A stretch of DNA of 64,000 bases from Phaeosaccion multiseriatum (Eukaryota > Protista > Ochrophyta, other classes), in contig OZ218952.1 in NCBI GenBank assembly GCA_965112735.1, positions 1,860,001 through 1,924,000 on the forward strand, in the 5' to 3' direction. Below the pieces are notes generated by a model, which worked only from the letters and a program-made list of their open reading frames with translations, had not been told where the DNA came from and did not search any database. The translations under genes were made by a program, and so were the position numbers. This document shows, one piece after another, positions 43,742 to 62,492 of the stretch (position 1 is its first letter; each line of letters starts with the position of its first letter).

Positions 43742-44306
43742 CATGATTCAACACGAAGGCCACCTATGGAGAGGGAACAAGGGAGAGAGGGTCTCCCCTC
43801 TTCGTTTGTGAGATTGTTCTCTGCTACTTGATCGAAGGACGGCGGTAATGACTGGAGGCAAAGCAGAAAGTGCAGTTATCTTCCCCGTCCTTGCAATATA
43901 CCCTCCAACTACCTCCCGCTGCTCCTTTACTTCCTCGAGGGGAGGATGGGAAAAGAAAAAAAAAAAAAGCTCAAACTCACAAAACAGCGCCCACCCTGGG
44001 GGAAGTTGGGCACCCAAACTCACTCACCATACATCGACGAGGGTGAAAAAGAAAAAGCGCCGAACGAGCTGTCCGGATTGCCCAGGAATTGTGAGGAGCC
44101 ACCCACATGGGCACTTGGATTGGGGCCTTGGATTGATAGCCCGGTGACGCTCCTCCCTACTTTGTCAACCTGGCGGCCTGCCCCTCAGGGAGGTTGATTG
44201 GAGGTCTAATAAAACTGAAACTGGAACATACCTAAACCTGCTTCCTCCCTGGCCATGTGTGCCTCCACCCCCTTGATCTTCGCGACCAACGGTTAATGGG
44301 CGTGGT

Positions 44307-44359
<53 letters not shown>

Positions 44360-44463
44360 TTCTTCTCTGTGGCCCTTGTTGGGGTCACCGGCCTATCGCG
44401 CCAGGGCACGCTCGGAATGGACTTTTCTTCTGAGGTGGTATGTGGCTTGACTGTACGTAAAGG
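43742..44463. repeat. Left outer inverted arm (A)
   Basis: Near-identical reverse complement of 61774-62492, with SNPs and small indels. Confidence 0.95.
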
Positions 44464-45244
44464 GCTCGTTGGGGGCCACGCTAGAGACATGCTCGGCCCC
44501 ATGCACGCCTAGCGGTTTTCCTCTAGGCCGCTAGGCCGCTCGGCCTTCGGCCGCTCTAGGCCGCTCACTTTTCAGTCCTAGGCGGCCTATAGCCCGCCTC
44601 TAGCCAGCCTCCCAGTGACCGTGGGCGCGTGCGTGGTGCAGCCCAGCCAGTGGGTAGCAGTACTCCTCGTAGGGCCAGCGAGGCGGAAAGAGACAACACG
44701 AGTCTCACTTCCAATACATTCGATATACTACAAGTATTTGCTTAAAATTGACTAGTACTCTGGGCACTCTCACCGTCCCGTCGGCCTGGAGCGAAGGCCG
44801 AGGCAACGAAGGTGGTACTCATTTCCACAGGTGCCCTCGTTGTAGCAGAGACAATGATGATGTGGCGGGGATTGAGCTTTGTGAGGAGCTTGATCGCAGA
44901 GGACAGGGTAACAGCAGTGATGTGATCGTGAACGGATGGTGCTCGTCATTCGCATGCTTTAGGGGCTATGCGGAGCAGGAGAAGGAGAAGTTGCGTCAGC
45001 AGACAGCGAAGGAAGAAGAAGAATGGCGTCAGTCGCGGCCAGAGCAGTCTGATGGGCCGCGGGCTGCAATGCAGGCAGCAGCAGCCTCAGTGGCAACCTC
45101 GGGCAGCTCGGCATTGGCGACAACACCAAGGGATATTCGACATGGGCCCAACCCAGCAGCAGACAGAAGTGACGACACTCTTAGGCAGAGGGAGGGGCGA
45201 AGCGAGCTAAGAGTGAGCGATAAGTCTGTTTGTTTCAAATATTT

Positions 45245-45370
45245 ATCAATTCTTAAAGCTTTGTCGCTCTAGTGCTTCCTTGCCAATATCAATTCTTAAA
45301 GCTTTGTCGCTCTAGTGCTTCCTTGCCAATATCAAATCTTAAAGCTTTGTCGCTCTAGTGCTTCCTTGCC
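45245..45370 (+). repeat. Triple ~43-bp tandem repeat at the 3' end of the left peptide gene
   Basis: tatcaattcttaaagctttgtcgctctagtgcttccttgccaa x3. Confidence 0.9.
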
Positions 45371-46102
45371 TTGCCCTTGCCCTTGCCCTTGCCCTTGCCC
45401 TTGCCCTTGCCCTTGCCCTTCTGTGAGTGACAAGCGAGAGAGGGAAGAGAAGAGGGAGGTGCGTCAGTGTTACGTGAAAAGCAACAAAGACACGACACGA
45501 CAAGATGACACAAAAAAGCGCACAACGTACCTTGCCCTTGCCCTTGCCCTTCTTGCCCTTCTGTTTACGAAAGAGAAGAGAGAGAGAATGGGGAGAGGTG
45601 TGAGTGACGAAAGTGGGAGGAGGAGCTGAAAAAACACGAGACAAAAAAGCGCGTACCTTCCCCTTCTTGCCCTTTCCCTTGCCCTTCTTGCCCTTGCCCT
45701 TCTGTGAGATACAAGCGAGAGTGGGGGAATGGGAGAGGTGTGTGGCTGAGTGGGAGGCAGCAGCAGAGGGCAATCGTAAAAGTAGCTACGTGTCACAAGA
45801 TCACGAGGGGAACAAGGCGTTACCTTTCCCTTCTTGCCCTTGCCCTTGTCGGAGCTGCTGCTGCTGCTGCTGGAGGAGGACGAAGAGGAGGACGAGCTGT
45901 CCTTGGAGACCTTGCCGCCGTGCTTGTTCCAGGGAGATGTCCACGACAGGTTCCGCTCCACAGTGGCCGCCTCCCTGGTGGCCGCCTCCCCGAGCTCGCG
46001 CTTCTTCAGCTCGTCGTTGGAGGGCTCCCCGAGCTTGGCGGTGGCGTGGTTGATGATGGCGAGGAAGGCCAGGAGGGCGGTGGCGAAGAAGGAGAATCGC
46101 AT
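45355..46102 (-). CDS. Secreted silaffin-like poly-Ser/Lys-Gly peptide precursor, copy 1 (139 aa)
   Basis: Exons 46102-45824, 45701-45657, 45560-45531, 45420-45355, all phase 0 GT-AG. Signal peptide, KKREL and ERNL motifs, S16, (KG/KKG)n ending KARKH*. Confidence 0.8.
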
Positions 46103-46809
46103 GATGCTCGCGACGGTGTTGAGATAGGCTGCAGTCTTTGGTTTTGTCGAGTGGAGATGTGTTGTGAGCAGCCTGGCCAGGAGCCTCGCCTGGTTCCCCT
46201 CTCCAGATCCTTAGCGCCATCCCTTTATGTTCCCACTCTACACAAAAGCAAATTTCCACAAAGGTAAAAGGTAACAATTAACGATCTTCGGCAGTTGGTG
46301 CTCCAGGGAATTTTTGTTTGTGACTTTTTCGCATCCCACTTACTCGGCCCGTCAAGGGGCATCGGGTGCCGTCCGCTGGCCATCCAAAAAGTCGTTACGT
46401 TTCTGGGACGTGCCATCTGGGACGTCCAGTGGACGTCCGTGAGAGCAGGGGCGTGAGGGGGACGTCCGAAAAACCAGACGGCCTCTGTACGTCCTTGGAC
46501 AGGGTGGACGTACCCGGTACGTCCACCATGTCCTGCACGCACCCCGGACGTCCACTGGCCGTGCGTGCTGGGGACGTGCATTGGGCCTTGTCCGTGCCGT
46601 GTACGTGTGTGTGTGTGTGTGCGTGTCGGTGAAGGCACGTGCTTGTATACCTCAGGTGGGGGCGCAACCTCGGCGTGGACTGTGCCACGACCATTGTGTA
46701 GACTAGAACAATTGATATTAGTATGCATTGCAGTAGACTGCTTACGAGGCGGAAGGCGAAGTTAGAGTGTGCTCTGTCTACGACTGCCGTTCCGATGTGA
46801 GTGGCGTGC

Positions 46810-52853: not shown

Positions 52854-55833
52854 AGAGGAAGAGAGACAGTGGTTTAGGAGACGAAGAATGAGAGCAGAGG
52901 CGGGAAGGGTAGGGTAGGCAGGCAAGGCAAGCGACAAACATACCCCTCCTTCAAAATCCCTGATCCCTCCTATTTTCCCTACCCTCTCTATTCTTTCTAT
53001 CCCCTCCCCTCACCCCTCCCACTTTCCTTACCTGCATTCAGGCTCGCCCACTGCCCCGCATCCGAGACCTACTCCTCCGGTGAGGCAGAGGGGCTCAGTG
53101 TAGCATGGCTCCTCGTCACTGCACGCGCCCGCACATGCATCATCGCCGCCTCCTCCCGTAGAGGGGGTTGGTGGTGGTGATGGCGGGGTGGTGGGGGTAG
53201 GGGCAATTTCCCTCGGCGCAGCGGGGGTGGGTGTTGGGGCCGGGGGAGACGGCGAAGGGCCAGATCCAGATTCCGTGGGGCACGGCACGTTTACGTAGGG
53301 GCCGAAACCGCAGAATCTGGGGAGGGAACAAGACAAAAGGAAGGGGGAACAGGGGGTGTGGGGGGTTAACTCGAGTATTTTGGTGTCAGGGGGCTTGGCG
53401 GGGAAAAGGCGTCCTTGTCAGACTCAAGCACCATAGCGGCGTAACGCGGGTGAAGGGGAAGGGAGAGAGCAAGTAGAAAGGCAAACCTACCTGCATTCCA
53501 GGATACCACGGACGCCGCATCCGAGACCGGCCCCCCCTCCGCGGCAACGGGACTCCCAGTAGCACGGCTCTGTGGCGGTGCACAGAGGAGCACACGTGGT
53601 GTCCGTCGAGTCTCCTCCGGAGGACGGAGTAGGCGTGGGAGGAGTAGGGGTGGGAGGAGTAGGCGTGGGAGGAGTAGGGGTGGGAGGAGTAGGTGTGGGG
53701 GGAGTAGGTGTAGGGGGAGTAGGTGTGGGGCCAGATCCCGTCGGGCACTCGACGCTTTCATAGGGGAAGAAGCCGCAGAATCTGGGGAGCAAAAGAGGGA
53801 AAAAACGGTGGGGAGGGGTGAGTGGTTGTGTGGTGTATGTGGCTCAAGTGGGGGGCTTGTGTGGAGAACGCATTTCAAGGCACAGGTGAAAGAAAGGGTG
53901 CGGGGTGTGCGAGATGTGTCCCTCGGTAGAAAAAACCTTTCCGATACCTGCATGTCAGGATGCCCCTCACGCCGCATCCGAGACCGGCTCCTCCTCCGTC
54001 GCAACGGGGCTCTACATAGCACGGCTCTGTGGCGGTGCACAGAGGAGCACACGTGGTGTCCGTCGAGTCTCCTCCGGAGGACGGAGTAGGCGTGGGAGGA
54101 GTAGGGGTGGGAGGAGTAGGGGTGGGGGGAGTAGGTGTGGGGGGAGTAGGTGTAGGGGGAGTAGGTGTGGGGGGAGTAGGTGTGGGGCCAGATCCCGTCG
54201 GGCACTCGACGCTTTCATAGGGGAAGAAGCCGCAGAATCTGGAGAGCAAAAGAGGGAAGAAACGGTGGGGAGGGGTGAGTGGTTGTGTGGTGTGTATGTG
54301 TATCAAGTGGGGGGCTTGTGTGGAGAAGGCATTTCAGGGCACAGGTGAAAGAAAGGGTGTGGGGTGTGCGAGACGAGTCCTTTGGTAGAAAAAACCTTTA
54401 CGATACCTGCATGTCAGGATGCCCCTCACGCCACATCCGAGACCGGCTCCTCCTCCGTCGCAACGGGGCTCTACATAGCACGGCTCTGTGGCGGTGCACA
54501 GAGGAGCACACGTGGTGTCTGTATCTCCGGCAGTGGGCATAGCAGTTGGCGCGGCGACCGGCGCAGGCGTGGGGGTAGGGCCAGCAGTAGGGGCGGCGAC
54601 CGGAGTCGGGGTAGGGGCGGAAACCGGAGTGGGGGTAGGGGGCACGACGGGTGCAGGAGTAGGAGGAGCAGTGGGCGCGGCAGTGGGAGGAGCAGTGGGC
54701 GCGGCAGTGGGAGGAGCAGTGGGCGCGGCAGTGGGAGTAGACACATTATCCCCAGGGTCCGAGTTGGGAGGAGGGGTGCCCACTCCGCCAAAGGCTCGAG
54801 GCGTAGGAGCGGGCGCAGTGCCACGCTGCGACCTCCACGTGTCGCCGCCGCCGCTGGTGCACGTGGCGGTGGGCTGAGACACACCGTAGGCATCCGCCAC
54901 ACAGGGCGGGCAGTCGGGCACGTCGCCGGGGTTTTGTCCGTTATTGGCATCGCTCCACTGGCAGCGGTCCGTGTAGCACAAGCGGCACCCAGCGCTGAGG
55001 CCAGTGTTGGTGCATCCAGGGGCGTCAGGGTAGTCGAAGCAGACGAGGTCGTAGAAGGCGCCCAGGCCGGTGGAGCGGTCCAGCTGGCTCACAGCGGCGG
55101 TACAGGGCACAGGAGCGTAGTCGCACTCGGGCTCGTTGGCAATGCACGTGTTGTCGATACTCATGACGTCAACCACCCTGGAGGTTGACAGCGGGCCGCC
55201 CTCATTGGTAATGGAGTTGAAGCCTCGCACGCGCACCTGCATGCGGTACACACCGTCGGGCACATGCACTCGGTCCGAGAGGGTAGAGGCAGGCACCACC
55301 GTGGCTCGGGCGTAGCTGGAGCTCGGCAGGTGCGCGTGGCCTCCGCCGAGGACGGTGCTGAGGTAGATAATGTAGTGCGTGACGCCATCGAGGGGGTTCC
55401 ACGTCACTCGGATGCCCTCGAAGCCCTCCTCTGCCGCGTTGGTGACGGTTACAGCATCAATGTCCGACGTCAGGGTCGGGCTCAGCGGCCTATAATGGGC
55501 TCGCACCGAGCTCGGCGCGTTGATGATCTCCGTCAGGCTGTTGGAATTTCTGCGGACGGTAGAGCCGCCGGCGGGGGTCACAGTCCAGTAGGCGAATTCG
55601 TACACTTGTTCGGAGTCCGCCTAGGGGCAATGGCAGTGGATGGGGAGTATGGGGTGTACGGAGGAGGAGCAAGTCAGACAAGAATGTGCCAGACGAAAAA
55701 CATTTGCTTCACACACACACATACACATACGTCAGAGCAAGTGAGGGACAGTCTTTTAACGGGACAAGGAATGTTTTTTCCCACATCGATCGACTCCCCT
55801 TCCTCTTCTCTGTCTCTCTCTTCCCCTTCCCCA

Positions 55834-57883: not shown

Positions 57884-59135
57884 GGAAGCCCGCTGCCTCC
57901 CCCGGCACAGGGCCTTTCGCCAACGAAGAAGGTAGCGACGGCGGCAGCAGGGCTTGCAAGCCTGCAATTATCTGGCCTCCCAGCAGCAGCAGCAGTAGCA
58001 GCAGAGCAACTCTCCCCCCCCCCCCCCCCACCGCGTTCAAACAGACAGGGCCTTTTCCCCACACACACAGCCACAGCGTCAAAGCAGACAGCACCTTAAA
58101 CACCCACAACACACCCCTGCCGCCACAGCCCCTCTACTCACCGATATAGACGTCCCCCGTGCCGGGCTCCAGGGTCATCTTGAAAGGGTTGCGCAGCCCC
58201 ACTGCGATGATGAAAAAGTCAGTGCCCTCCACCATTTCGTTCCCCCCCCCCGCCAAAAGGTAGCCGCCAGTAATACGCAACACCTTGCCGTTAAGGAAGT
58301 CCATGCGCTGCGAGCGGAAGGCCCCCTGCGGTCGCCAGGGCTGGCCGTCTTGCACGTAGGTCTCATCGTACTCGAGGCCGGTGTCGATGGCCCCCAGCGC
58401 CTGTGAGCCCTCTCCCGAGGACAAAATCATGCTGCCGTCGTCGAGGAAGAGAATGGTGCCCATGTGGTGGGTCATGGAGGAGGCCCACCAGTCACGCTTT
58501 AAGATTTTGTCGGGCACCGCGTCCTGGTACCCGGTAATGACCCCGTTCCCGTTGGTGATGGGCTCAAGGATGAAGCGCTGCAGCACACCCGGTGCCGCGC
58601 AGAACAGGTTCGTGTCCCCAGGGAACCTAATGGTGCACTGGTCATCGGGGTAGGGCGTGGAGGGCTGCCCTGTGTAGAGGACGTATATATAGTAGTTGCC
58701 CCCGATGCCCCAGTTCGGGTGGAAGGCGAAGCTGCTCATGCCCCGGTCATGCCAGCTAAAAACATTGTCGGACCAGTCCAGCAGCCTCCGGTCCACCGTG
58801 GACGCGTCGGAGCCTCGGCTGCGAACGTCCAGGAAGCCGCGCTGATTGAGCATGAAGACGTGCGTGTCCGGTATGGGCGAGCCGGGTGGAGAGAAGGCGG
58901 TCTGGAGAATGTGACTGCTTACTCCCTGGGCTGGCCCCCAAATTCGATTGAGCTCGGTGAATGCGGCCCCCGAGGCCCCCGGTGTTAAGGGGTTGCCCTC
59001 TGAGCATCTCGCCTCCGCGACAGGCGCACTATTGAAGGTCAAAAGCGTCAGCAGTACCAGCATCAGGGCACTGCTGGTCACCACCAGCGGCCTCAACGAC
59101 TGCCTCCGCACCCCATGCTGTGCTGTGGCACCCAT
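52731..59135 (-). CDS. Large secreted PQQ-dependent glucose/sorbosone dehydrogenase (GSDH) + PKD + FN3-like + Pro/Thr linker + Cys-rich repeat protein
   Basis: Hydrophobic leader; DRGMSSFAFHPNW, THHMGTILF, SSGEG, LNGKVLRI, GLRNPFK, GDVG..EEIN..NFGWPCMEG; PKD motifs TITFDASSS..YVFDFDD..SHTFDNPGLYIVSVT. Exons 59135-58142, ~57776-57482, ~57209-56916, ~56637-55876, ~55620-54407, three repeat exons, and 52773-52731. Confidence 0.88.
53487..54520 (-). repeat. Tandem ~458-bp exon+intron duplications encoding (PT)n + Cys-rich modules
   Basis: Near-identical units beginning ~53490, ~53947 and ~54406, including intron sequence. Confidence 0.92.
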
Positions 59136-60692
59136 CCTACTCACGCCTTGGATGCCTGCAGCCGCCCCTCTCCGTGCTGCTGCGCCCCCCGCCACGGTGC
59201 CCCAAAAACCCCTTGCACGGCACAGACCGCTGGCTATAAACAGCGAAATCGCGAAGTCCCGCTCTCTTGCTCCGCACAGGGCCGCTTGAAGAACCGGAGC
59301 TGTGCGTTTGCAAACGGGTTGCAAGGAGATGAGTCAGGCGAAGGCGGACAGTGTGCATAAACGCAGGGAGCACTGAAAGAGCATGTGGTGAGCGTGCAAG
59401 GTAAAACCGTGGCCGAAGAGAAGAGTAAGTTAGTCTCAACTTCATCACGTAAAAATTTGGGGAAAAGATGCGCGCAATACTACTCACCCTCTGTCCTGTA
59501 TCCCTCAGCTCCCTTCTCTCCTCTTGCTCCTTGTTTGCCCTTTGATCGAGTGCTCCTTCCTCCTGTGCTGGTCGTGGTGGTTATTACAGCACGCCTCTCA
59601 ACAGGGGTGACATTGACCTATCAATTCAATCCACGCCGGCTGTTGCTGAAATCAAATTTTATCGACTGGGCGCCTTTTTTGGTGGGTGCGTGGTGAACGG
59701 AATGGAAAATGGAAATTTGCTAATATTTCGAGCGTTTTCGGCTTGTATTCGGGGTTGTGAGGGGATTTACGGGCTCCTCCTGGCCCTCCTCCTTACCCTT
59801 GGCCCCACTGTTCGACTTGGTAGTTTCCTTCACTGGCTGCTGGTGGCCACTTCAGCAGACTGCCGGTGCCGCAAGAGTTAGGAAGGCCCCCTAAACGTGA
59901 CTGCTCACTGAAGGTGCACGGAATAATAAAACGGAGACCACAACAACAGCTGCTGGATTCGACTGGATGATACCTCGGTGTTTGGAGGAGTCGGTGAACC
60001 GTCTCTAACTAATCTTTAACTCAGATTCTTCGCCTGCTTACTCCAACCCTTGGTGGGAGCTTCTTCACTCCCACCCTTGGTCGTGCTGCTCAATGAGCAA
60101 GATTGGGTTTCCGATTTGGCATGAACGAGTGGCCTACTCCATCGAAACTCCACAGTGGGCGGATGAGTAATGGACATCTCACCTTCACACCTGCTGTCCA
60201 CCGGCTGGACTTACCAAGGTGACCAAGGACCCTGCTCAGGAAGTTAGGTGCCTTTACCGGGCTGAACTTCATACGAGAGTTGGAGAACCGAATGGGAGAT
60301 CGACGGCCTGGCGGGACAACTACCGCACAGAGCTTCTGTGAGCGGACACGCATAGCAAATTCTGCTACAGAAGCACGCTGCAAGCATAACCTCTACACCC
60401 AAACTGAGGCTTCACAACCCGACTTTCGGACGACTTCGATCACCCAGAAAATAAGTTAATGAAAGAACAGGGGGGGGGGATTTGGAATTTGGAGCACCAA
60501 CTGCCGAAGATGCGTTAATTGTTACCTTTTCCTTTGTGGAAATTTGCTTTTGTGTAGAGTGGGAACATAAAGGGATGGCGCTAAGGATCTGGAGAGGGGA
60601 ACCAGGCGAGGCTCCTGGCCAGGCTGCTCACAACACATCTCCACTCGACAAAACCAAAGACTGCAGCCTATCTCAACACCGTCGCGAGCATC

Positions 60693-61431
60693 ATGCGATT
60701 CTCCTTCTTCGCCACCGCCCTCCTGGCCTTCCTCGCCATCATCAACCACGCCACCGCCAAGCTCGGGGAGCCCTCCAACGACGAGCTGAAGAAGCGCGAG
60801 CTCGGGGAGGCGGCCACCAGGGAGGCGGCCACTGTGGAGCGGAACCTGTCGTGGACATCTCCCTGGAACAAGCACGGCGGCAAGGTCTCCAAGGACAGCT
60901 CGTCCTCCTCTTCGTCCTCCTCCAGCAGCAGCAGCAGCAGCTCCGACAAGGGCAAGGGCAAGAAGGGAAAGGTAACGCCTTGTTCCCCTCGTGATCTTGT
61001 GACACGTAGCTACTTTTACGATTGCCCTCCTCTGCTGCTGCCTCCCACTCAGCCACACACCTCTCCCATTCCCCCACTCTCGCTTGTATCTCACAGAAGG
61101 GCAAGGGCAAGAAGGGAAAGGTGCGTCGTTTTTTAGCTGTCTTTGTCCCTCACAGCTCCTCCCACTTTCGTCACTCACACCTCTCCCCATTCTCTCTCTC
61201 TTCTCTTTCGTTAACAGGGCAAGGGCAAGAAGGGAAAGGTGCGTGTTTTTTTGTCTTGTTGTCCCTCACAGCCACAGCTCCTCCCACTTTCGTCACTCAC
61301 ACCTCTCCCCATTCTCTCTCTCTCTTCTCTTTCGTTAACAGAAGGGCAAGGGCAAGAAGGGCAAGGGCAAGGGCAAGAAGGGCAAGGGCAAGAAGGGCAA
61401 GGGCAAGGGCAAGGGCAAGGGCAAGCACTAA
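60693..61431 (+). CDS. Secreted silaffin-like poly-Ser/Lys-Gly peptide precursor, copy 2 (137 aa)
   Basis: Exons 60693-60971, 61097-61120 (KGKGKKGK), 61218-61238 (GKGKKGK), 61342-61431; exon 1 protein identical to copy 1. Confidence 0.8.
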
Positions 61432-61773
61432 GAGCTATTTATCAGAAGACAAAGCTTTAAGAATTGTATTTATTAATTAAAAGTATGTTCGGCCCCAGCC
61501 ATGCACGCATAGCCACATCTGTAGGCCTGCACTCCTCGTGGGGCCAGCGAGGCGGAAAGAGCACGAACCAACTACTCCTCACTTCCAATCCATTCGATAC
61601 ATTTGCATAAAACTGACTACTCTTTGCACTCTGGGCACTCCCACCGTCCTCTCCTTCCTTTGATCTCTCCTCTAGCTACGACACTTGAGCGGGTTCCGGG
61701 CCAGCCCAGTAGGCCGCGGGCCTACGGCCCTCGCTAGGCCGGGCAATTTTCCAAAATAGGCCTAGGCCGCTAG

Positions 61774-61877
61774 CCTTTACGTACAGTCAAGCCACATACC
61801 ACCTCAGAAGAAAAGTCCATTCCGAGCGTGCCCTGGCGCGATGGGCCGGTGACCCCAACAAGGGCCACAGAGAAGAA

Positions 61878-61932
<55 letters not shown>

Positions 61933-62492
61933 ACCACGCCCATTAGCCGTTGGTCGCGAAGATCAAGGGGGTGGAGGCACACATGGCCAGGGAGGAAGCA
62001 GGTTTAGGTATGTTTCAGTTTCAGTTTTATTTGACCTCGCTCCAATCAACCTCCCTGAGGGGTAGGCCGCCAGGTTGACAAAGTAGGGAGGAACGTCACC
62101 GGGCTATCAATCCAAGGCCCCAATCCAAGTGCCCATGTGGGTGGCTCCTCACAATTCCTGGGCAATCCGGACAGCTCGCTGTTTCGTTCACTCCTCGTCG
62201 ATGTATGGTGAGTGAGTTTGGGTGCCCAACTTCCCCCAGGGTGGGCGCTGTTTTGTGAGTTTGAGCTCAATTTTTTTCTTTTCCCATCCTCCCCTCGAGG
62301 AAGTAAAAGGAGCAGCGGGAGCTAGTTGGAGGGTATATTGCAAGGACGGGGAAGATAACTGCACTTTCTGCTTTGCCTCCAGTCATTACCGCCGTCCTTC
62401 GATCAAGTAGCAGAGAACAATCTCACAAACGAAGAGGGGAGACCCTCTCTCCCTTGTTCCCTCTCCATAGGTGGCCTTCGTGTTGAATCATG
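61774..62492. repeat. Right outer inverted arm (A')
   Basis: Reverse complement of 43742-44463. Confidence 0.95.

Follow-up and report, generated by a model that had tools for sequence, protein, structure and literature searches.

The locus at 60693-61431 on the plus strand of the window (the whole 64-kb stretch of DNA that was analysed) raises the question of whether a nuclear gene for a secreted, Ser- and Lys-rich protein exists here and, if it does, whether its product belongs with the silaffins of diatoms, as an earlier note on this DNA had proposed, or is a material of another kind.

Gene structure and the two copies

In the model of this locus, copy A, an exon 1 of 279 nt is followed by three predicted phase-0 micro-exons of 24, 21, and 87 nt plus stop. 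Exon 1 (60693-60971; 93 codons, ending in phase 0) is separated by intron 1 (60972-61096; 125 nt, GTAACG...CACAG, 70% pyrimidine) from micro-exon 2 (61097-61120; 24 nt, KGKGKKGK, in-frame CAI 0.886). Intron 2 (61121-61217; 97 nt, GTGCGT...AACAG, 77% pyrimidine) leads to micro-exon 3 (61218-61238; 21 nt, GKGKKGK), and intron 3 (61239-61341; 103 nt), a duplicate of intron 2 inside a 122-bp exon-plus-intron tandem unit, leads to the terminal exon (61342-61431), which encodes 28 Lys/Gly residues, His, and TAA with an in-frame CAI of 1.0. GT..AG borders are common to all three introns, whose pyrimidine content is 70-77%; purines make up at least 83% of the micro-exons. Every exon length is a multiple of 3 and every exon is in phase 0, and an AG stands immediately before each of blocks 2 to 4, as does a GT immediately after each but the last. 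Read without splicing, the frame continues into intron 1 as far as a stop at 61136 (147 aa), and the Lys/Gly tail is therefore missing from the list of open reading frames, as the earlier note had remarked. Adding up the exons, one arrives at a predicted product of 137 residues, among them 36 Lys, 25 Gly, and 21 Ser, with a net charge of +30 once the signal peptide is taken off.

The gene is preceded on the plus strand by a block at 60490-60692, the putative promoter and 5' UTR, which is common to copy A and an inverted paralogue, copy B; it is ~98-100% identical to 46305-46103 on the minus strand, and this identity ends sharply at 60490. Copy B occupies 45355-46305 on the minus strand (upstream block 46305-46103, gene 46102-45355), with predicted exons at 46102-45824, 45701-45657, 45560-45531, and 45420-45355. 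Its exon 1 is identical to that of copy A, and the first introns of the two copies are identical but for a 3-nt indel. The tails are divided differently: the micro-exons of copy B measure 45, 30, and 63 nt plus TAG, all in phase 0, and its introns 122, 96, and 110 nt, again GT..AG, so that the tail residues are distributed over the exons as 8/15/10/21, compared to 8/8/7/29 in copy A. For all the difference in exon size from copy A, copy B is still in frame, with its GT-AG sites intact and a stop at its end. Lys and Gly number 30 and 21 in either tail, an equality that comes from two copies only. The earlier model of a spliced gene with a Ser16 block and a Lys/Gly tail on micro-exons is upheld by the agreement of sequence anatomy, coding signature, and copy B, with splicing predicted.

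The copies are borne, one each, on the arms of an inverted repeat (~43742-46305 and 60490-62492, 94-99% identity), of which the outer part at 61774-62492 pairs with 43742-44463 (94-99% complementary). Among the features between the arms is the gene of a secreted GSDH-PKD protein; in this one neighbour, which we examined for a similar layout, a signal peptide is present and an RXL domain is absent.

Layout of the predicted protein

Residues 1-22 (60693-60758, plus strand) constitute the predicted signal peptide, composed of MR, a 15-residue hydrophobic core, and NHATA, with Ala at -3 and -1. The N terminus thus shows the n, h, and c regions typical of signal peptides, AxA stands at the predicted cleavage site, and AF2, run without an alignment, placed a helix at residues 3-24; the earlier impression of a secretory N terminus is borne out by both. 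A further, low-confidence helix was obtained at 29-52, and disorder past residue 52. AF2 and the database searches took the spliced model one exon at a time. Ochrophyte plastid signals carry an aromatic residue at +1; plastid targeting was rejected, given the Lys at +1 and the acidic pro-region found here.

The following stretch, K23-L52 (60759-60848), is a candidate propeptide of 30 residues, charged, with REL inside and RNL at its end. Since it is exactly 30 residues long and ends in RNL, as does the RXL domain of diatoms, a cut after RNL and before SWTSPW may reasonably be inferred by analogy with that layout. In a shuffle test, at least two RXL motifs within 46 residues came out with P = 0.016, a test that was chosen after the fact and a value that is only mildly unusual. 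Of the RXL processing sites claimed earlier, what stands is the layout (the 30-residue stretch ending in RNL, the inner REL, and the likeness to diatoms); the motif statistics add little to it.

Arg-x-Leu motifs tens of residues past the signal peptide are likewise found in Plasmodium PEXEL (cut by plasmepsin V), Toxoplasma TEXEL (ASP5), and oomycete RXLR proteins, and the first motif here, RELGE, fits RxLxE (PMC4740378, PMC4764566), a fit that may be due to chance (P = 0.016). However, these motifs mark host-targeted effectors of parasites, and RXLR and dEER are absent here. The echo of RXLR-dEER that had been noted earlier has to be given up: the motifs are RELG and RNLS, and neither RXLR nor EER occurs.

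Beyond the candidate propeptide lie a Trp/Pro/Lys segment, SWTSPWNKHGGKVSKD (residues 53-68; 60849-60896), which contains SKDS, and the Ser16 block (residues 69-84; 60897-60944), written in mixed TCG/TCC/TCT/AGC codons and, as far as its sequence indicates, a candidate site for dense O-phosphorylation or O-glycosylation. Exon 1 closes in phase 0 with Asp and the first Lys/Gly unit, KGKGKKGK (60945-60971). The whole Lys/Gly tail of copy A has 52 residues, 30 of them Lys and 21 Gly. Dehydrins have an S-segment and a K-segment; a likeness to them was rejected, because a signal peptide is present here and the Pfam search returned no dehydrin match.

Homology searches

No match to exon 1 was returned by a word-indexed search through 5.8 billion proteins, and an exhaustive phmmer search of residues 1-68 against 1.84 billion representatives returned only repeat-inflated TPR proteins and other repeat proteins. 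The E-value of 4.7e-12 for a bacterial TPR protein adds up nine of its repeats, each of which reaches 26-31 bits by itself; the query, in turn, consists of one unit, and there are only 4 matches among 1.84 billion proteins. A relationship to TPR proteins was rejected and the matches were put down to chance. The TPR matches and the query share W-x-SPWN-x-x-G. In the Pfam search, nothing was found except SR-25 (PF10500), which was rejected as well: it scored 17.9 bits against a gathering cut-off of 40 and covered the Ser/Lys low-complexity part only. The ESM Atlas gave no usable match, and of 600 pattern matches in JGI metagenome contigs, 0 were confirmed. In an exact-product look-up, the unspliced 147-aa ORF and the neighbouring PPR ORF were both unrecorded; the protein collections searched contain no proteins of the source genome. 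On the basis of its sequence, the gene of copies A and B cannot be assigned to any family.

Relation to silaffins and position of the host

The silaffin-type reading states that an RXL-cut zwitterion of phospho-Ser and Lys self-assembles and templates silica, be it in cysts, in scales, or in a silicified wall layer. In diatoms, the RXL domain comprises about 30 residues after the signal peptide, ends in RXL, and is removed as a propeptide by an unknown protease (PMC5525289, PMC4557024), and the predicted protein shares with diatom biosilica proteins the sequence of ER signal peptide and ~30-residue stretch ending in RXL. It also shares a low-complexity body rich in Ser and Lys. The zwitterionic phospho-Ser/Lys peptides of diatoms self-assemble (PMC4557024), and a zwitterion with this potential could arise here too, with charge balance possible if Ser16 is phosphorylated. 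The density of Lys matches that of pentalysine clusters, defined as 5 non-consecutive Lys within 12-14 residues (PMC9650480); with ~7 Lys per 12 residues across the tail of copy A, this number is exceeded trivially. Furthermore, silaffins themselves lack sequence conservation between species (PMC4557024, PMC5525289, PMC9650480), as does the protein described here.

Against a role in silica formation stands, in the first place, that no homology to silica proteins was found in the protein, Pfam, and metagenome searches. A screen for silaffin-like proteins uses repeated KXXK, with X being S or G, 1-6 residues apart (PMC5501833). No K[SG][SG]K occurs in any exon translation; outside the tail, KXXK is present once, as KVSK, and the motifs of the tail are KGKK and KKGK. 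Instead of Ser interspersed with Lys in KXXK, the protein has two segregated, homopolymer-like blocks of Ser and Lys. It is, moreover, a single unit, whereas silaffins can consist of RXL-separated repeats, and its tail lies on micro-exons.

The lineage of the host may be a further argument. The window encodes an MTR4 helicase that most resembles its counterparts in Laminaria, Chrysoparadoxa, and Discosporangium. In a maximum-likelihood tree of MTR4, the single gene on which this placement is based, the host stands with Chrysoparadoxa and the brown algae (87/90) inside a 7-row clade (98/99). It is not part of the Laminaria-Discosporangium pair and lies apart from diatoms, Mallomonas, Aureococcus, and oomycetes. 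The earlier note had suspected a non-diatom ochrophyte, and the tree agrees. Chrysoparadoxa and the brown algae are not known to bear silica coverings.

Taken together, a silica-templating role is quite unlikely. The earlier term "silaffin-like" remains apt for the design (signal peptide, RXL, Ser plus Lys) but not for membership, given the missing homology and the outcome of the KXXK screen; we use it as a description of design. Membership of the silaffins is defined biochemically by association with biosilica, precipitation of silica, phospho-Ser, and polyamine- or methyl-Lys (PMC4557024). Within this set, precipitation of silica deserves a comment. Any polylysine-like peptide precipitates silica in vitro, and such an assay is therefore non-discriminating.

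A proposed role as a secreted, polycationic extracellular material

The reading that we prefer, and to which we give about an even chance, takes the product for a block polyampholyte or a polycation that is secreted and used as a material of wall, glue, or mucilage. What the sequence shows is the anatomy, the coding signature, the duplication, and the lack of relatives in the searches; that the transcript is spliced and the product secreted, cut at RXL, modified on Ser, and used as a material is what we infer. The protein would enter the ER through a cleavable signal peptide, and the 30-residue propeptide would probably be removed at RNL. The secreted form would be intrinsically disordered, with ~85 residues, the Ser16 block, a Lys/Gly tail of ~52 residues, and a charge of roughly +30. 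The tail may then bind putative polyanions electrostatically, such as anionic polymers of wall or mucilage, surfaces, or, if it is densely phosphorylated, the protein's own Ser block, and the outcome would be a condensed extracellular material, for example a wall matrix, a glue, a plug, or mucilage. If the Ser block is not phosphorylated, the product would act as a plain polycation that binds anionic wall or mucilage polymers or surfaces.

It is imaginable that the two blocks neutralize each other. In the product cut at RNL, 33 Lys face 2 Asp and 16 phospho-Ser (counted as -2 each and assumed to be phosphorylated), which gives a net charge of about -1 for copy A and 0 for copy B under this assumption. 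That the protein is a single-chain, charge-balanced, self-coacervating polyampholyte, released by an RXL-type cut and with the balance held in both copies, is unlikely in our estimate. If it were so, the "silaffin grammar" and its processing machinery would predate diatom silica and belong to a general toolkit of ochrophytes for forming materials, and the duplication of micro-exon units would be a built-in charge tuner.

The closest counterpart of the material reading is the cement of the sandcastle worm Phragmatopoma, in which polySer(P) and Lys-rich polycations form a coacervate glue (PMC5633886). A polySer(P) polyanion and a Lys/Gly-rich polycation as secreted, disordered partners are common to both systems, in the alga at the level of sequence only. 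The worm, however, carries the two charges on separate proteins and cures its cement via DOPA, whereas the algal blocks are on one chain that offers no Tyr/DOPA. What is distinctive about the algal protein is that Ser and Lys stand in separate blocks on one chain, that the polycation is encoded by duplicating micro-exons, and that the host is not a diatom.

Until now, descriptions of the combination of signal peptide, RXL domain, and Ser/Lys low complexity have been confined to the biosilica proteins of diatoms. Should the gene be expressed in its modelled form, this design would be known outside diatoms, and a relative of the brown algae would have a silaffin-like design, so that a tie to silica would not be needed. 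The product would, furthermore, be a natural one-chain block copolymer of polySer and polyLys, which is relevant to underwater glues and coacervate materials.

Paralogues and the possibility of a defence peptide

The two copies may not be alone. At 60699-60755, in the signal-peptide codons, the summed depth of read contigs exceeds that of the flanks by a factor of ~10, although depth does not equal copy number, and one contig with a foreign 5' flank joins the locus at 60689, four bases upstream of the ATG. Because of this depth and this junction, we suggest that many paralogues elsewhere share the signal-peptide segment and that copies A and B are members of a lineage-specific multigene family.

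Such a family resembles the MEGs of Schistosoma, secreted, lineage-specific, and fast-evolving, in which a signal-peptide exon is combined with very short symmetrical exons (PMC10526429, PMC4350168). Here, too, a predicted signal-peptide exon is followed by symmetrical exons of 24 and 21 nt in copy A and of 45 and 30 nt in copy B. On the other hand, MEG introns are up to ~5 kb long, compared to ~100 nt here, where they are tandem copies of one unit, and MEG peptides are not Lys/Gly homopolymers; the likeness is one of architecture, and the searches with exon 1 revealed no homology.

The family could also be read as one of cationic host-defence or allelopathic peptides, in which a precursor with a neutralizing pro-region releases a Lys/Gly polycation that binds microbial envelopes. 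A signal peptide, a pro-region, and a strongly cationic C-terminal part are all in place, the duplication is recent, and the tail turns over quickly. The signal-peptide exon is apparently conserved across many paralogues with variable mature parts. A conserved signal peptide in front of a variable mature part is a pattern known from families of peptide toxins and AMPs. Yet the tail contains no hydrophobic or aromatic residues and hence no amphipathicity, and the Ser16 block would be left unexplained. We consider a defence peptide very unlikely and, between the two alternatives of a wall or adhesive peptide and a cationic antimicrobial that had been raised earlier, prefer the former.

Evidence for a coding gene

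All of the above presupposes that the locus is a gene. It could instead be non-functional: exon 1 would then be a short orphan ORF or the remains of a decaying gene, the AAGGGC blocks would be microsatellite-like, and the flanking GT and AG would have been inherited by duplication. A duplication of the unit does automatically copy splice-like flanks, and no homologue was found in any of the protein, profile, and metagenome searches. The copies A and B are, furthermore, too alike for a test of selection: the identity is as high in intron 1 as in exon 1, which leaves no dN/dS signal.

Nor did the reads yield any RNA evidence. In a read search, four runs of unrecorded kind held ~80% of the words of the locus, and four more held only 4%. 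The contigs of the matching runs were compared with 1,701 letters at the locus, the repeat-bearing exon ends 60898-60972 and 61342-61434 being skipped, so that splice joints had no chance to show up. The contigs span introns as well as intergenic DNA, and for this reason the contigs over the locus of copy A look like DNA. A loose contig end of 10 letters at 61097 was considered as a splice junction and rejected, since exon 2 and the last part of exon 1 have the same sequence.

The codon usage, in contrast, argues clearly for a gene. With a CAI reference from the window itself (homology-confirmed exons of MTR4 plus the PPR ORF), codons 1-68, the part without low complexity, reach a CAI of 0.884 and a GC3 of 0.94, the best of six frames, and the best CAI among the control windows (n = 68, six frames each) is 0.782. 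In the repeats, the Lys-Gly frame has a CAI of 0.87-1.0, compared to 0.35-0.78 for the Arg-Ala and Gly-Gln frames, and uses preferred codons: AAG accounts for 82% of Lys, and GGC is the top codon for Gly. Runs of K/G of at least 7 residues are found within the 64 kb only in copies A and B and always in the sense frame, and runs of AAGGGC are likewise confined to the two copies. A point against the gene is that poly-Ser reading frames are common in the window, which is rich in CT and AGC repeats. The splice sites have local precedent as well: two introns of MTR4, delimited by tblastn with proteins of Laminaria and Chrysoparadoxa, are also GT..AG with 3' parts rich in CT/CA.

Several features of the exon-intron structure also speak against a non-functional locus. 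The four internal micro-exons of the two copies (24, 21, 45, and 30 nt) are all multiples of 3, stops occur only at the end of the array in both copies, purine-rich exons contrast sharply with pyrimidine-rich introns, and the codons of the signal peptide are apparently common to many paralogues. Together with an extreme codon bias in the proposed frame, above that of all controls, these features leave a non-functional locus only a very small probability. Since several independent lines of sequence evidence agree, we regard the intron-split nuclear gene as real, with predicted splicing, and it is probable that its product is a real secreted polycationic protein.

Growth of the tail by micro-exon units

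The internal exons are all symmetrical, and skipping any one of them would thus keep the frame, a principle on which the micro-exon genes of schistosomes are also built (PMC10526429). Symmetrical, cassette-like exons with a very Lys-rich and predicted secreted tail are reminiscent of elastin, with its Lys-rich cassette exons and its cross-link domains in an Ala/Pro context, but a substrate whose tail lysines are oxidized, as by lysyl oxidase, or transamidated, as by transglutaminase, and thereby cure an extracellular matrix covalently is highly improbable here, as no enzyme partner was seen in the window (the neighbouring GSDH-PKD protein is not Lys-modifying) and the tail has no Ala/Pro context like that of the elastin domains.

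For the wall, glue, or mucilage polycation that we prefer, the same exons offer a way to adjust the size of the charged block, since the tail may be lengthened, shortened, and reshuffled through tandem duplication or recombination of the ~122-bp exon-plus-intron unit. Provided that expression follows the model, the gene would clearly exemplify a charge block resized by such duplication. Genes with a micro-exon tail of this kind will be overlooked by ORF-based and by many homology-based gene callers. Tandem Repeats Finder detected the 122-bp unit of micro-exon and intron in 2.2 copies at 61097-61366 with 87% matches. An alignment of the six introns of copies A and B shows that all are related and share a YTNAY-type core (CTCAC/CTGAC), ~45 nt upstream of the 3' splice site, and a pyrimidine (CT) tract. 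Because of this relationship, and judged by sequence comparison, the array has in all likelihood grown and been reshuffled by duplication and recombination of ~122-bp units; the third intron of copy B is a mosaic of two intron types.

Results and discussion

The gene next to copy A, the plus-strand gene (60693-61431) for a precursor with a signal peptide, RXL-ending pro-region, Ser16 and Lys/Gly tail, bears on how widely the RXL arrangement is used. This GSDH-PKD gene (58137-59324, minus strand) lies head-to-head with copy A, ~1.3 kb upstream, and its product has its own signal peptide, a hydrophobic core followed by AEA|R. Despite this signal peptide, no RXL domain was present in the sequence encoded at 58137-59324, and therefore, an RXL domain after the signal peptide is not general among the secreted proteins of this organism. 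The C-terminal exon of GSDH-PKD (Pro/Thr-rich plus Cys-rich) is re-encoded by a tandem repeat at 53266-54522 (unit of 457-459 bp, 93-94% identity), and a near-identical Cys-rich peptide ends both ORFs 53875-54306 and 54334-55605. These terminal exons may be alternative or duplicated.

Within the copy A product, an N-x-S sequon (N51-L52-S53) overlaps the putative RNL|S cleavage site (60843-60851), where N-glycosylation could compete with cleavage. Residues 24-63 (60762-60881), comprising the pro-region and SWTSPWN, align with individual repeats in a pair of TPR-array proteins from bacteria (P0124 and P0127) at 38-41% identity. The E-value of 4.7e-12 from the database search owes its size to the summing of 9 repeats, and we take the similarity to be chance. 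It is curious that W-x-SPWN-x-x-G is common to copy A and the bacterial repeats.

About 4% of the words sampled from 60560-61640 were present in four runs, of which three are marine or surface metatranscriptomes and the fourth comes from a different named organism. In the last of these, X2, the sole match was the 28-nt micro-exon of the AAGGGC type with its AG/GT flanks; this is low-complexity sequence, and the match does not count as evidence of expression.

In copy B, the inverted paralogue, three tandem copies are present of a 44-bp unit that runs from the final codons through the stop into the beginning of the 3'UTR (45270-45420, minus strand). The triplication explains both the atypical ...KARKH end of copy B and the two extra copies of the stop region outside the gene.

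Directly 3' of copy A lies a dispersed repeat of very high copy number (61497-61781), with word depths of 5,000-60,000 versus ~100 in the flanks (summed over contigs) in three runs. A single partial, diverged copy (77%) is found in the 3' flank of copy B (44662-44778).
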